64,000 nt of DNA from Oculina patagonica (GCF_052425735.1 NC_135770.1:37696001-37760000), one strand, 5' to 3'. Shown: positions 8,168-59,836, counted from the stretch's first letter. The notes: generated by a model from the sequence alone, not told the origin. A program made the numbers and translations.

Positions 8168-9470
8168 TTAGCATGTCACATAACTAGTGCAACTGAAGCC
8201 GTAGAAGAATGGGACGAGGCAATACGCACTCCAAGGATCCTTCTGACAACACATGTCGTGCTTGTAACATCCCCGGTGCCAACAACAATCTCCACAAACC
8301 CATGACCAGCACCGACAGCTTGGACCACACATGCCAGTACAATAATTATTTTGTGGATCGCTTGTCAAACTGCAGCGCTTCTGTCTTTCACCATGCTTAT
8401 CAGCGGATTCATCATCTAAGTCGTGCACAGCCTCCTGTCTCAGCTCGGCTGGAATCTGAAAGTCCGAAGTCTTGAGAAGATTGAAGCAAAGGGCATGAAA
8501 TGGCTTCAGAATATCCAACTGGGTAGAGTTGTCGTTCAGCGCTACGGACACGAGTTCAAGAAGTTGGATTTCTTGAACGTTATGTAACTCCCGTGTGGCT
8601 TGTTGATAATGACTTTTCAGCGTCTCAAGTTCTGTGGGCGTCTCCTCAGTAGTTTGGTTCATCGTCAGACTCAGAAACTCACGAAGCTCATGTGGAACCC
8701 TGGGAATGTTGTCGGGAACATAGATCATCGACGGACCATGTCTGTAAAGTATTAGCACGGCATTGTCATTTAATCATCATCATCATTGACATTAACTTGT
8801 TATTGTTATTATCATCATCATCACTATTATTATTATCTGTTATTATTAATCGTAGTTTTGTTTTGACAGTATAAACTTTCGTGTTCAGTAAGCAGGTTTT
8901 ATTTATACTTTTACCCCCTCTCTCCTATGTGTGAAATCCTGCGTTTTAGCTTTGCTGCAGTTCTTGACTAGTTTATGAATGTAAAACAACTGAGGTGCAA
9001 CACGTACTTTTTATAATTGATCAAAAGCAGGGTATTGTTCCGAAACGACCAAGATAACAAGACGGGACGGGACGGGACGGGACAGGAAGAAATGATGGCA
9101 ATCTATAAGTAACTTTTTTAAAAAAAAAAGTCCCTTTTAACTGTTATCGTTCCCTCACCAGCCCGCAACTGATTGTGACTTACCCGATGAATCCTTGGTC
9201 TAAAACATTGTAGTAGAACATGTTTGAACCAAGTTCCTGGAAAAACACAATTGCTTCTCCTGTCGTCTTCAGCAATTTCATGAAGCCTTTGCGAACGCCA
9301 AAACAAATGCCCAAGGTTTGATTGTAGTTGTAGCACCCTTTGACCTGTTGTTCTGAGTAGCTCTCCAAGTGCAGCCCTTGAACGTTAGGTTTACAATCAG
9401 AACTTACTATCACTAAGCACAGAACTGCGGCGACTGAAAGCATGAAAATTGCAGCATTTGAAGTAGCCAT
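8168..9470 (-). CDS. Secreted Cys-rich pre-pro-peptide, copy 1 (type A); exons 9470-9184 and 8741-8168; 286 aa
   Basis: aaaATGG start; hydrophobic signal peptide; GG|GTAAGT donor and ttacAG|A acceptor join in frame (QGFIG-HGPS); RQKR site followed by a 68-aa, 14-Cys peptide. Confidence 0.9.
9060..9085 (+). repeat. (GACGG)n microsatellite in the copy 1 intron
   Basis: gacgggacgggacgggacgggacagg. Confidence 0.8.
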
Positions 9471-9504
9471 TTTACACGGCTTCAATAGTTCAGTGTTTCT
9501 GACT

Positions 9505-11250
9505 GAAGCCTGGTTACTCCATTGGCTTATTAAGTTAGCTTAAGAGTTCCTTTTCAGCCTTTAATGAGCCTTGATGATAATTCGCTCGTTTGTTTACTTC
9601 CCGGCTGAGGCTTCAGTTAAGCGCTTCCTTAGTTGATAAAATTTAGACAAACAATTCCTCCGTATATGACATGTTTTCATTAAATTAATATCAGCAGTAT
9701 TATTTTGTTTACATAGTAACATGACAAATTTAATATTGTGTACCTAGAAGGAAGCACTTTGATCAAATTGTACGTTTTGTTACTTGTTAAATTAAATTTA
9801 AATCGTATGGTTCAAGGAAACTACAGCTCACTTAGACGCCTTCTTCTTGTCGTTTCGATTGTTGTTGTAGTGCTGTGGTACACTAACATGGCCTTAACAT
9901 GGCAACAGCCAAACTAATTAAGGAACTGAGAACTGATATTTCTATCAATATTTTACTTCCAATCGGTATTCTTCAGATACCACGAGCTCCAACTTATTCA
10001 CGAACATTATAACTTCGTTTGCGAATATATTCTTACCATCAGCCCGCGGCGACAAGTCCAAATGTAGCCCGCTATTTATAAATCACCCAATAGCCAATCA
10101 GAGTACGAGGATTCTCAATAACAAAATACCAATTCAGCAATCGGTAATGTCAATTAATTTTCAAGAAGCTTCACGAAGACAGGGTCATCAGCTTCCCGGC
10201 ACCAGCTTGTCGGAACGTTGACTAAAAACGAATGGCTTCCGTTCAGCAAAAAATTAATTCTTCTTGTTTTTCGCTTGTAAATTTAGATTGGTAAATGTTT
10301 CACGTCTCAGTGACGTCCCCTCGTATATCCGCATAGAATAAGTGAGAAACTTCTGAATTAGAGAAACTGGTAGAAATCCACGTCATAATCAGTCACATTC
10401 ACTGTGTGTTTGTAGAAAGACTACAAGTGCTATCATACAAGGACCGTTTCATATAGCGGTTGGTTAAGGATCGTTAAGGCTGACTGTTGTGTCAAATACT
10501 TAAGATAGGATCATGTAACGCAGCGCAGTGAATCAACAACTTAACTTCCCACACACCTGGAAAATTATAAGATCCGTACTTTTGAAAAAGGTTTAAAAGG
10601 AGCTATGTTAACAATAATCATCCGGCATTTGGCCCGAACATATTCACTATTATTTGTCCACGGACATTATTTTTGTCCAAATAAAAAAAGAGAAACAGGG
10701 AGAAATAATTGTTTTGGACAGACTGGTTACGTATTCTGCGTATTCATTTTGACATGTCACAGGATTACCCAAACGGAGAAGCCTCGAGTAAAAACTGACA
10801 TGTCATAGTGATCATAAAAACATTGACATCCATTAAGCCTCTAAACAGAATACACGGATATTTGTCTTGCACATCGTGATCTGTTCCTCGAAGTTCACAG
10901 TTTTCCTCGAGGCTTCGCTAAAAGCAAGTCGCCTCTAGGAACAAATAACAGCCCCGGGTAGATATATTTTCGCGCCAAATTGAGATTATTTTTAATATTT
11001 CCCCCAGTACGTTTTGGCTGCAGCAATTATTCAGAGCGTGCACTGATGTAAATCGCCAGTGGGTGAAGTGTTCGATGCATTATAAGTCACGATATAAAGT
11101 AATTTTTTACAAATTTTGCAAAATTCCCTCGAATTTTACGGAAACCTTAGAAAGGAGTTGGATCAGAGTTAAAAAGAATCGGGAAGATTGAGAAACCAAG
11201 CAATAACCTTGCAAGAGAAACATGAGAAAATATAAGCCATTAAAAATAAT
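9505..11250. repeat. Upstream region of copy 1, duplicated at ~41943-43620 and partly at ~28050-28565
   Basis: Colinear, near-identical sequence (e.g. ttactccattggcttattaag...; gcaagagaaacatgagaaaa). Confidence 0.9.
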
Positions 11251-57129: not shown

Positions 57130-57338
57130 AAATAACTCATAAATTTTGAGCCTGTGCTATGTGGTCCAAGAGGGCGCCCAAAAACAACATGGCGCAGAAC
57201 GGTAGAAACGGAGTTAAGGGAGCTCAATTACAGCTGGAGCACCACTGAAAAACTGGCTAGAGATAGGCAGGGTTGGAGAAACTTCGTTGCTGCCCTATGT
57301 GCCACACAGGCATGATGGGCAGTAAGTAAGTAAGTAAG
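57130..57338 (+). mobile_element. Short RTE-like LINE 3' end
   Basis: ...agggcgcccaaaaacaacatggcgcagaacggtaga...gctgccctatgtgccacacaggcatga followed by a (GTAA)n tail. Confidence 0.5.
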
Positions 57339-58618
57339 CTGTGTGGTCTCCTCGAAAATCTTCGGTAGTGTTGATCATCTTTGGTAGTCTTCAGAAATCT
57401 TCGGCAGTCTTCGGGAATCTTCGGTAGTGTTCGGAAATCTTCCGAAATGATGGGAATCGTCGGAAAATGGCCGAGAACTTTTCGATATACTAAACAAAAT
57501 AATATTGGCATTTTTGGATACATATAATTTACTGTTACAGTGAACTTTTTACTGTTAGTGTCGGCCTAAAAGGTAACTGTTTCATGATACAGAGCCAAAA
57601 AAATTAGGTGTTTACAGGAGCCCATCAATGATGGGCTCCTGGTGTTTAGTGTTATCGGAGTACCCCCATTCAGGCCCTCATAAAAATGGTATCACTTAGG
57701 GGTCATGAAGGCTTAAGCCACACCCAGATTGGTCTCCTTTAGGAGTTTAATTCAAATTATCCGACGATCATCCCCGTCCCTTTCATATGTGAGTCCCGCC
57801 CCCCAGGGGAAAGTTTGGGCCTTCTTGGTTCTGGTAAATTCTAGAAACTTCTTTGCCGAGTTAAATTCTTTCATTTTAATCTCCCTGGTGGGGTGTGCCG
57901 GCATCCCTGGTGGAATTGAAAAGCAGAGACCGATACAACGTAGAATGATAAAATTAGTTTTGTACTATATTTCGGCCGGCCAAACCAGCCTTCTTCAGGT
58001 ACAATGGAGTTTACATTGGCTATGTTTAAATTTATATGGTGATAATGGTCTTACGAAATACCGGAAATACGTAAAACTAAATACAGGAAATATGTAAACA
58101 GTGTAAAATAAAACATTTAAAAAATGCTATTAAAGCTTAAAAATGACAATAAAATAGTACAAGTAGAAAAACTAATAGATTTCTTCGCGTATGTTAAGGC
58201 CATCGGGAACAAGTGTTCTGCCTTTTAAAATTAAAAAAGCTTCTTAATCCCTGGTGGGTTGGCCCCGCAGAAGAATCCCAGAGCCCGTACGTCTCGTATA
58301 CCGGCATTTTCTGGTCTCCCTTGGTGGATTGCTGTCCGCCCTTCTAAAGATTTTATCGAATTCCTGGCGATCATCCATTAAAAGCAATGATCTGGTAATG
58401 ACAAACCCAAAGTCATAAAAGTGCATGCACTCTGAAGTTAAACTAACTTCAATACGTGCACGAGCTTTAAAAAAATCACAGAAAGATTTCGTTTTGGTTC
58501 TCACAAAATAGCTTGACATAATATTATTGGAAAATGAAGCGGATTTTTGTAACAAACCCATAATTACCGAAAGAAAGCATTTGATTCTCAAACAGTTTTC
58601 AATCTTGTACCCAGGTCC

Positions 58619-59836
58619 TTAGCATGTCACATAACTAGTGCAATTGAAGCCGTAGAAGAATGGGACGAGGCAATACGCACTCCAATAATCTTTTTGACAA
58701 CAGATATCGTGTTCATAACATCCCCGGTGCCAACAGCAATCTCCGCAAATCCACGACCAACACCGACAGCTTGGACCACACATGCCAGTACAATAATTAT
58801 TATGTGGATCGCTTGTCAAACTACAACGCTTCTTTCTTTCACCATGCTTGTCAGCGGTTTCATCATCTAAGTCGTGCATAGCTTTCAGCTCGGTTGGAGT
58901 CTGAATGTCTGAAGCCTTGAGAAGATTGAAGCAAAGACCATGAAATGGCTTCAGAATATCCAACTGGGTAGAGTTGTCGCTCAGTGCTACGGACACGAGT
59001 TCCAGAAGGCGAATTTCTCGAATGTAGCGCAGCTCGCTAATGGCTTCTTGATAATGGCTTTTCAGCGCTTCATGTGCTATAGATGTTTCATCGGCAATTT
59101 GGTTCATCGTCAGAAACTCACGAAACTCGTGTGGAACTCTGGGAATGTTGTCGGGAACGTAGATCATCGACGCACCGTGCCTAAAATAATAGTAGGAAAT
59201 GTTGATTGTTTGACTCAATGTCTTAGTTATCAAAACTTTCGTCCTTAGCTTTTTTACTTGACTAACAGCAGTCCCTGCTTTGTTTGTCAAATGAAAAACA
59301 AGAAGGGAAAATGATCGCGCGAAACTTATTGGCGAGGGAAAGAATCTAGGGAAAAGAGGGACATGCTCGAAGTCTACGTTTTTAAGTCAAATTTGTTTTG
59401 GAAGATTTACGACTCTTTTCCTTGAGTTATTTCCCTGGAAAGGCTTATTTATTACAAGTGATAACATTACAATGATGCACGTATTATGGTTGGTCATCCT
59501 GCATTCTATATTTTTGCATAAATAATACTTGTGTGTGTTTGTAACTTACCCAATGAATCCTCGGTCTAAAATCTCGTAATAAAACATATTTGAGCCATAT
59601 TCCTGGAAAAATACAATTTCTCTTTCTGTCTTCTTCAGTAATTTCATGAAGCCTTTGCAAACATCAAAACAAATGCCCAAGGTTTGATTGTAGTTGTAGC
59701 ATCCTTTGACTTGCTGCTCTGAGTAACTCTCCAAGTGCAGCCCTTGAACGTTAAATTTACAATCAGAACTAACTGCCATAAAGCACAGAACCGCTGTAGC
59801 TAAGAGCGTGTAAACCGTTGCATTTGAATGAGACAT
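58619..59836 (-). CDS. Secreted Cys-rich pre-pro-peptide, copy 5 (type A); exons 59836-59550 and 59180-58619; 282 aa
   Basis: Signal peptide; GG|GTAAGT ... ttttAG|G in frame; RKKR site; 68-aa 14-Cys peptide nearly identical to copy 1. Confidence 0.9.

Follow-up and report, generated by a model that had tools for sequence, protein, structure and literature searches.

Among the closest described counterparts of the genes considered here are two kinds of secreted, cysteine-rich peptide. The SCRiPs (small cysteine-rich proteins) of stony corals and sea anemones are encoded in multiple copies, and some carry convertase sites. They have an eight-Cys framework with three adjacent C-terminal Cys, and are made as preproteins of 68–83 amino acids (aa) that mature to 40–48 aa (PMC10892658). 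Damicornin and AmAMP1 are made in corals as prepropeptides that carry a dibasic site for processing and yield a Cys-rich mature part, in some cases amidated (PMC12745922); both are built on ShK-type six-Cys domains. A 64,000-nucleotide stretch of the genome of the scleractinian coral Oculina patagonica (GCF_052425735.1 NC_135770.1:37696001-37760000), referred to here as the window, contains between positions 8168 and 59836 five genes (g1 to g5) for secreted cysteine-rich proteins that depart from both. Their precursors measure 282–311 aa and place 14–15 Cys in 68–92 aa behind a pro-region of ~190 aa, and their family, unlike the SCRiPs, reaches bacteria. The framework and size also differ from those of damicornin and AmAMP1, and no ShK domain is found in Pfam searches of the five window proteins. 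An original prediction, made by a model from the sequence of the window alone, had set these genes apart from SCRiPs and damicornin, and Cys count, framework, sizes and the absence of an ShK match all uphold that separation.

Sequence comparison places the five genes, which are tandem paralogues, in an old and unnamed family whose exported pro-proteins are present in Myxococcota-type bacteria, sponges and anthozoans. The interpretation that we favour, tentatively and with a probability of roughly 0.45, is that these are latent pro-proteins from which the Cys-rich module is set free, in corals through cleavage by furin-type convertases, and that it then acts through a conserved Asp/His centre.

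Gene models and precursor architecture

The interval holds exactly five intact two-exon paralogues, all on the minus strand. Joining exon 1, which ends in GG before a GTAAGT donor, to exon 2, which starts with A or G after a (C/T)AG acceptor, produces five open frames with zero internal stops, encoding 286, 311, 308, 292 and 282 aa for g1 to g5. The length of exon 1 is 2 mod 3 in all five genes, making the GT-AG intron phase 2, and in every copy the intron follows the second base of the same Gly codon. Gene g1 (8168–9470) consists of exon 1 at 9470–9184, a 442-nt intron at 9183–8742 and exon 2 at 8741–8168, including the stop; g2 (25238–26609) of exon 1 at 26609–26314, a 436-nt intron at 26313–25878 and exon 2 at 25877–25238; g3 (35785–40780) of exon 1 at 40780–40488, a 4069-nt intron at 40487–36419 and exon 2 at 36418–35785; g4 (52962–54314, with its ATG at 54314) of exon 1 at 54314–54022, a 474-nt intron at 54021–53548 and exon 2 at 53547–52962; and g5 (58619–59836) of exon 1 at 59836–59550, a 369-nt intron at 59549–59181 and exon 2 at 59180–58619. 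The g3 intron is far longer than the ~440 nt of the other copies because it houses the remnant of a non-LTR retrotransposon (37419–39544, plus strand, opposite to g3). This element, a neighbour and not a member of the gene family, is not intact, its endonuclease and reverse-transcriptase pieces (Exo_endo_phos_2, RVT_1) being distributed over several separate open reading frames (ORFs). The g1 and g3 models agree at every residue with the GenBank proteins ACROYT_G042595 and ACROYT_G042597 of O. patagonica, and ACROYT_G042602 is contained within the g5 model. A tblastn search of the window with the five models returns these five copies alone and no extra fragments, and beyond the window the same scaffold carries at least two more paralogues, ACROYT_G042603 and LOC144634461. 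The predicted set of five intact genes sharing one phase-2 intron position is therefore confirmed by five uninterrupted frames, two of them equal to deposited proteins, as is the remark that the ORF track splits each gene in two: the mechanical ORF list breaks all five in this way.

The predicted splicing finds support in a relative. A 1220-nt, transcript-like pocilloporid contig from Logan (L001) carries a full-length family member as a single ORF, and aligns to a Stylophora pistillata genomic locus (L003, LSMT01000181.1) in two blocks, with ~620 bp absent exactly at the predicted junction; the intron is therefore common to another coral family and spliced out in the transcript. The same Stylophora locus contains three tandem copies (2724–3157, 6088–7263 and 10001–11468), the first of which matches parts of the protein only and may be truncated or degenerate, and Desmophyllum has two near-adjacent family genes (OS493_005483 and OS493_005485). 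In O. patagonica, self-alignment of the window indicates that the duplications take in flanking DNA, with upstream blocks common to g1, g2 and g3, and that g1 pairs with g5 while g2, g3 and g4 form a second group.

The five precursors share one layout, consisting of a signal peptide, a beta domain of ~65 aa, a helical region of ~90 aa, a variable acidic linker and a C-terminal module of 68–92 aa. Feature counts made by script show an N-terminal hydrophobic segment in 5/5 precursors, two glycosylation sequons present in 5/5 genes (NQT, encoded in exon 1, and NST, located in the helical region), and a 30-aa linker with 6–9 Asp and Glu that ends in a single R-x-K-R site per gene (RQKR in g1, RKKR in g2 to g5), and so bear out each of these predicted features. 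From sequence and structural model, all five also combine the two properties of a furin-type substrate, a secretory signal and R-x-K/R-R in a segment predicted to be exposed. After the site, the Cys spacings are 10, 3, 3, 1, 4, 2 (3), 0, 4, 5, 0, 8, 9 and 5 or 9. The predicted framework holds in these spacings, but it misses an additional Cys that g2 and g3 carry within the eight-residue spacer, and a last spacing of 8 in the same two genes.

The module comprises 68 aa with 14 Cys in g1 (8171–8374, directly after the RQKR codons at 8386–8375) and in g5 (58825–58622), while the part after RKKR comprises 92 aa with 15 Cys in g2 (25516–25241) and g3 (36063–35788) and 82 aa with 14 Cys in g4 (53210–52965). 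The first Cys abuts the R-x-K-R site in g1, g4 and g5, and is preceded by 8–9 extra residues in g2 and g3. The copies differ further at their C-termini. The g1 and g5 products end at the last Cys, and those of g2 (25241–25276) and g3 (35788–35823) continue into a cationic, Trp/Arg-rich tail of 12 residues. The g4 product closes with Trp-Gly followed by basic residues (52965–52994, ending in WGKRK), the usual signal for C-terminal trimming and amidation, and Trp-Gly-Lys is also C-terminal in several coral relatives.

Divergence among the five copies was estimated by region with simple pairwise Nei-Gojobori calculations. Among the regions and pairs in which substitutions are numerous enough for a judgement, nearly all have a ratio of nonsynonymous to synonymous divergence (dN/dS) below 1, and in the module it lies between 0.12 and 0.72. 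Values close to 1 or higher are few and arise in the signal and linker segments, which are short and contain 0–2 synonymous changes. No positive selection is detected by these pairwise estimates, which are weak evidence on this point, with few changes per region and module dS saturated between clades. The signal peptide is the most divergent part among the five copies. Between the g1/g5 and g2/g3/g4 clades, dN is 0.25–0.34 in the module and 0.13–0.23 in the pro-region, while dS is ~0.3–0.6 in the beta, helical and linker parts and ~2 or saturated in the Cys-rich part. Similarly, the synonymous divergence of g2 and g4 is 0.10 in the 5' two-thirds and 0.57 in the module. This contrast between the 5' parts and the module implies that the genes are mosaics. 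Their 5' two-thirds have probably been homogenized by gene conversion over older module lineages, and the same pattern suggests, as an alternative, exchange of the 3' ends that encode the module.

Distribution and conserved residues of the family

The original prediction had described the family as uncharacterized, and had named a match to a characterized housekeeping family as evidence against its proposal. Pfam yields zero matches for the five window proteins at E ≤ 10 and for 52 diverse members at E ≤ 0.01, and Pfam and NCBIfam give zero family matches in bacterial members (for Pfam, eight members at E ≤ 0.1). The one DUF3624 match (L039) was set aside, as it falls in the upstream part of a stop-to-stop ORF, outside the family region. 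Searches of PDB sequences with a single protein and with two family profiles return nothing relevant at E ≤ 10. In the literature, no paper is found under the accessions or locus names of the named members, and keyword searches give nothing specific. On sequence grounds the family is thus uncharacterized, with no name, Pfam model or solved relative, and no housekeeping family emerges from Pfam, NCBIfam or PDB.

Structural comparison leads to a similar picture. The full-length AlphaFold2 (AF2) model has a mean predicted local distance difference test score (pLDDT) of 57, with values of ~80 in the beta domain, ~55 in the helical region, <50 in the linker and ~78 in the C-terminal half of the module, and Foldseek searches with it return only noise. 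A domain-only AF2 model of the module, based on a 150-sequence alignment, reaches a pLDDT of 85 and a predicted template modelling score of 0.73, and shows four short helices, the longest of which is predicted to contain His257-Asp258. Compared by Foldseek against 350,542 PDB chains, this model draws three matches in all, each with E > 6, and it has no match in the BFVD viral structure library. As modelled, the module is without a known structural relative by the means used.

An exhaustive hidden Markov model (HMM) search of 1.84 billion cluster representatives, with clusters drawn at 50% identity, retrieves 582 representatives at E ≤ 1e-3 and 357 at E ≤ 1e-10. Most of the 582 are 270–330 aa long and are matched from the beta domain through the last Cys, and the five window genes fit the family profile over its full length. 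Named members come from Stylophora (orthologue LOC111331916), Pocillopora, Desmophyllum, Nematostella (orthologue LOC116604279) and the sponges Corticium candelabrum and Amphimedon queenslandica, and each is annotated as "uncharacterized". Two sponge-type members (L042 and L043) are intronless single ORFs, one of them at a locus with two tandem copies, in eukaryotic contexts whose neighbours include exon-like nucleoporin and aminopeptidase fragments and a retroelement. Identity to g1 across the family is 45–65% in the module and ~25% over the whole protein, and the N-terminal part, taken at first for a prodomain, is also conserved from bacteria to corals.

The family is not specific to corals or cnidarians: sponges have it too, as do Myxococcota, Bacteroidota and Acidobacteriota, with the three-part architecture unchanged. 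Nor does the furin site define it: R-x-K-R is found in 40/53 coral-clade members (51/53 have some dibasic site before the module), in 61/284 other animal-type members and in 0/34 bacterial ones. Since the site is frequent in the coral clade only, furin processing would be a lineage feature and not the defining mechanism. With nearly all dN/dS values below 1 and the module the most conserved part family-wide, this is, by its sequences, not a fast-evolving toxin family; the pattern is the reverse of that in venom peptide families, where a conserved pro-region precedes a hypervariable mature peptide.

To survey the bacterial branch, a single genome of each prokaryotic species was scanned for the peptide pattern with the highest conservation. 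Of the 38 loci obtained, 35 contain an ORF that the HMM assigns to the family. Most belong to metagenome-assembled genomes (MAGs) of Myxococcota (Kofleriaceae, Haliangiales, Polyangia), with one genome each of Saprospira, Chitinophagaceae and Aridibacter, the hit in the last lying on a complete chromosome. One of the 35, from a "MAG: Ekhidna sp." (L032, CBDHDT010000038.1, 2932–3756), was rejected as bacterial. Its sequence and its place in the tree are sponge-type, its signal peptide resembles those of eukaryotes, and the surrounding DNA, with a GC content of 0.385, has only two ORFs of ≥150 aa in 6.7 kb; this is probably a host contig binned into the Ekhidna MAG. The other 34 members are, on sequence criteria, genuinely bacterial. 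GC content is ~0.69 in the single Myxococcota locus measured (L007), and the Saprospira, Chitinophagaceae and Aridibacter loci have GC contents of 0.36–0.50 and dense same-strand ORFs. Given the GC of 0.69, the lipoboxes and the operon context, assembly contamination is an unlikely source of these copies.

The 34 bacterial proteins span HMM positions ~1–273 of 290, that is, the whole three-part architecture. A lipobox-like end of the signal peptide is seen in 26 of them, and Tyr or Phe precedes the first Cys in 22. At 20 loci, a pairing characteristic of the Myxococcota, the next same-strand gene, within a few bases of the stop, encodes an S1 (trypsin-family) serine protease with intact His and Ser motifs, while ~14 loci have no protease neighbour despite sufficient flanking sequence. 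A gene for an FHA-domain sigma-54 enhancer-binding protein is adjacent in ~14 bacterial loci, and the arrangement is exemplified by one locus (L012) with the family gene at 2932–3759, the downstream S1 protease at 3763–4875 and the FHA-sigma54 gene at 4851–6593. The two Bacteroidota members (L036, Saprospira, 2254–3420; L038, Chitinophagaceae, 2137–3270) bear an extra Cys-rich C-terminal extension of ~100 aa, with which the module region contains 30 Cys.

Coral and myxobacterial proteins are 60–69% identical in the core and ~25% in the N-terminal part. Invariant positions were counted in 46 animal-type and 34 bacterial sequences, with cut-offs of ≥91% and ≥97%, respectively. Common to both kingdoms are 12 Cys together with G232, G235, W241, G246, D247, H251, G253, H257 and D258, and the centre of the module reads invariantly Asp-Cys-Cys-x-His-x-Gly-Cys-x-x-His-Asp. 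C260 and C286 occur in animal-type sequences only, which suggests one added disulfide, and the module is predicted to form 6 disulfides in bacteria and 7–8 in animals. In an unrooted neighbour-joining tree the bacteria stand apart from the animal-type sequences and the cnidarians group together; the direction of transfer is not decided by this tree.

Proposed maturation and possible function of the module

Under the favoured interpretation, the beta and helical N-terminal domains would constitute a folding or latency region for a module that forms 6–8 disulfides. In corals, a furin-type convertase would cut R-x-K-R in the secretory pathway and free the module as the active part; bacteria, which have no dibasic site, carry instead an adjoining gene for a dedicated S1 protease. 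Cleavage at the boundary would release or unmask the module, and its Asp/His centre would act by metal binding or catalysis on an extracellular target, be it microbes, membranes or matrix. Two lineages present a protease-related feature connected with the linker-module boundary: corals have a convertase motif, bacteria a dedicated protease gene. The Asp/His invariants held across kingdoms point to metal binding or catalysis and not to a rapidly diversifying receptor toxin, so that the module is, from its sequence conservation, more likely enzyme-like or metal-binding than a receptor-targeting toxin. By analogy, predatory myxobacteria and microbe-covered sessile animals may plausibly use it against other microbes.

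Several considerations weigh against this interpretation. Cleavage, the role of the N-terminal region and any activity are inferred for every member, and release of the module may not be general, as Nematostella and most sponge-type members lack a dibasic site. The conservation of the N-terminal part across kingdoms would also suit a protein that keeps all its domains. In bacteria, the protease could serve as target or partner instead of carrying out the processing, and the residue at its S1-pocket position is Gln, Phe or Arg, not Asp. Furthermore, the Asp/His invariants could be purely structural, and the low confidence of the full-length AF2 model makes domain-domain contacts unreadable. A wider scenario would cast the module as a new miniature catalytic or metal-binding fold that arose in a protease-activated lipoprotein effector of predatory Myxococcota and passed horizontally to a lineage near the base of the animals; sponges would have kept it intronless, and corals would have added an intron, N-glycosylation, a furin site and tandem amplification, turning it into an anti-microbial or microbiome-shaping effector. 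Taken as a whole, we consider this sequence of events unlikely.

Among the competing explanations, the one to which we give most weight, while still regarding it as distinctly unlikely, is that the protein stays unprocessed, as a stable multi-domain extracellular protein for matrix, adhesion or microbe binding in which the module is a binding domain and the coral dibasic motif is incidental or regulatory. Conservation between bacteria and corals covers the entire architecture and not just the module, 79% of the non-coral animal members and all bacterial ones lack the dibasic site, and the mostly lipoprotein nature of the bacterial members implies surface anchoring. This account leaves aside, however, the position of R-x-K-R exactly at a domain boundary, in an acidic, low-confidence and probably disordered linker, and its retention across most of the coral clade (40/53), as well as the tight linkage of a protease gene in bacteria and the presence of invariant Asp and His, unusual in a pure binding knot. 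Improbable, and more so than an unprocessed protein, is a set of classical venom or antimicrobial peptides, in which a coral weapon family stored in cnidocytes or gland cells diversifies by tandem duplication. The tandem array with signal peptide, pro-region, dibasic site and Cys-rich C-terminus suggests as much, as do the higher dN of the module relative to the pro-region between the two paralogue clades, the cationic Trp/Arg-rich tail of g2 and g3 and the amidation-type Gly and basic end of g4. Yet the module is the best-conserved part family-wide, occurs in sponges, which have no cnidocytes, and in bacteria, combines its dN/dS range with no sign of positive selection, and bears no likeness to SCRiPs, ShK-type antimicrobial peptides or toxin Pfam families (PMC10892658, PMC12745922).

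The His-Asp pair beside paired Cys recalls phospholipase A2 (PLA2), and the module could be conceived as a miniature secreted PLA2-like enzyme in which a Gly loop binds calcium and the helical His-Asp pair hydrolyses phospholipids after zymogen activation. An invariant G232-x-C234-G235 loop and the invariant H257-D258 in a predicted helix beside Cys pairs agree with this, secreted PLA2s (sPLA2s) are likewise small, disulfide-rich and precursor-made, and pancreatic prophospholipase A2 (1hn4_A) is one of the three Foldseek matches and the only enzyme in that set. That match is nevertheless at noise level (E 8.3, probability 0.01, TM 0.19, root-mean-square deviation 7.4 Å, 39 columns); no PLA2 Pfam family (PF00068, PF05826, PF06951, PF09056) is detected in more than 60 members, lenient E-values included; no PLA2 chain is recovered by single-sequence or profile searches of the PDB at E ≤ 10; and the 68-aa module lacks the long antiparallel helix pair and spaces its Cys pair and His-Asp differently from the PLA2 signature. 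Membership in the PLA2s was accordingly rejected on Pfam, PDB sequence, PDB profile and Foldseek evidence, and PLA2 activity, to which we assign less probability than to classical venom peptides, is retained as a low-probability functional analogy only. Very improbable in our estimation is a role as protease regulator, whether inhibitor or cofactor, of the adjacent S1 protease in bacteria and of host or microbial serine proteases in animals. Pairing with a trypsin-family gene on the same strand and with almost no spacer at 20 bacterial loci would be expected of such a regulator, and small disulfide-rich domains are common as protease inhibitors, but no Pfam inhibitor family matches, the animal loci examined have no linked protease gene, the ~14 bacterial loci without such a neighbour do not conform, and the Asp/His invariants are left unexplained. 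Least probable of all is a signalling ligand, a pro-hormone or growth-factor-like module released by a convertase to act on an animal receptor. Signal peptide, conserved pro-region, R-x-K-R and a C-terminal Cys-rich domain reproduce the layout of growth-factor pro-proteins, and strong purifying selection on the module would suit a ligand. Set against this, the same module occurs in soil bacteria, many tandem diverging copies are atypical for a conserved ligand, and no ligand family is found by Pfam, PDB or Foldseek, the cystine-knot growth-factor domain (TGF-beta, NGF) in particular having neither a Pfam match nor a Foldseek neighbour.

Surrounding DNA and relation to known systems

The remaining DNA of the window contains several other features. 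Between g1 and g2 lies a 150-bp satellite (11960–17851, plus strand) of ~40 units with 75–90% identity, followed by an inverted block of ~15 units of the same satellite (19985–22320). A (TTA)30 microsatellite (25124–25213), ~25 nt downstream of the g2 stop, gives rise to a spurious poly-Leu ORF (25094–25561, plus strand). The segment between g3 and g4 (45761–51077, minus strand) carries a run of ORFs of 95–197 aa, one with a weak RING-finger signature and an acidic tract and the others with no Pfam match, which could represent a multi-exon gene or a decayed mobile element. Two ordinary flanking genes, each a single long ORF on the plus strand, encode a DC-STAMP-like membrane protein (3–1442, touching the start of the window) and a tRNA-intron endonuclease subunit (4673–5788).

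New in this analysis are the existence of the family, a fold apparently without a match, a presumed prodomain that is conserved, and a distribution over Myxococcota, Porifera and Anthozoa with putative lineage-specific maturation devices. If the favoured interpretation is correct, a large unnamed family, of at least 582 clusters at 50% identity, would link soil myxobacteria with the earliest-branching, microbe-laden sessile animals, and would provide biologists working on corals, sponges and myxobacteria with one shared effector candidate that can be tested. Its history would probably include an ancient inter-kingdom transfer followed by eukaryotic "domestication" through intron, glycosylation and convertase site, and the module would enlarge the repertoire of secreted mini-enzymes or metal binders by a new scaffold, small and disulfide-rich, whose Asp/His centre is invariant. 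For surveys of coral venom and immunity, this would be a multi-copy secreted family invisible to homology-based toxin searches.

Three known systems resemble the family in part. The sPLA2s (groups I, II, III, IX, XII and XIV) are small, secreted, disulfide-rich and precursor-made, are present in bacteria and animals, and resemble the module in an invariant His-Asp pair beside Cys pairs, predicted to be helical in the module, and in a Gly-containing loop upstream. They differ in the absence of any HMM, profile or fold match, and the coral module, at about half their size, has no long helix pair, departs from the signature spacing and follows a conserved N-terminal region of ~190 aa that has no PLA2 counterpart. 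By analogy, secreted bacterial proteins that depend on a pro-region, such as alpha-lytic protease, found in predatory or lytic bacteria, also place a large conserved N-terminal pro-region before a disulfide-containing secreted domain and mature by proteolysis, as is proposed here. The two have no known relation in sequence or fold, however, and in the family described here the protease is a separate neighbouring gene, while the part that would mature is a Cys knot of 60–70 aa. Lastly, the conotoxin superfamilies exhibit the same succession of signal, pro-region, basic cleavage site and Cys-rich C-terminus, and a comparable expansion driven by duplication. In conotoxins, however, a conserved signal and pro-region precede a hypervariable mature part, whereas in the present family conservation is highest in the module and divergence greatest in the signal peptide.

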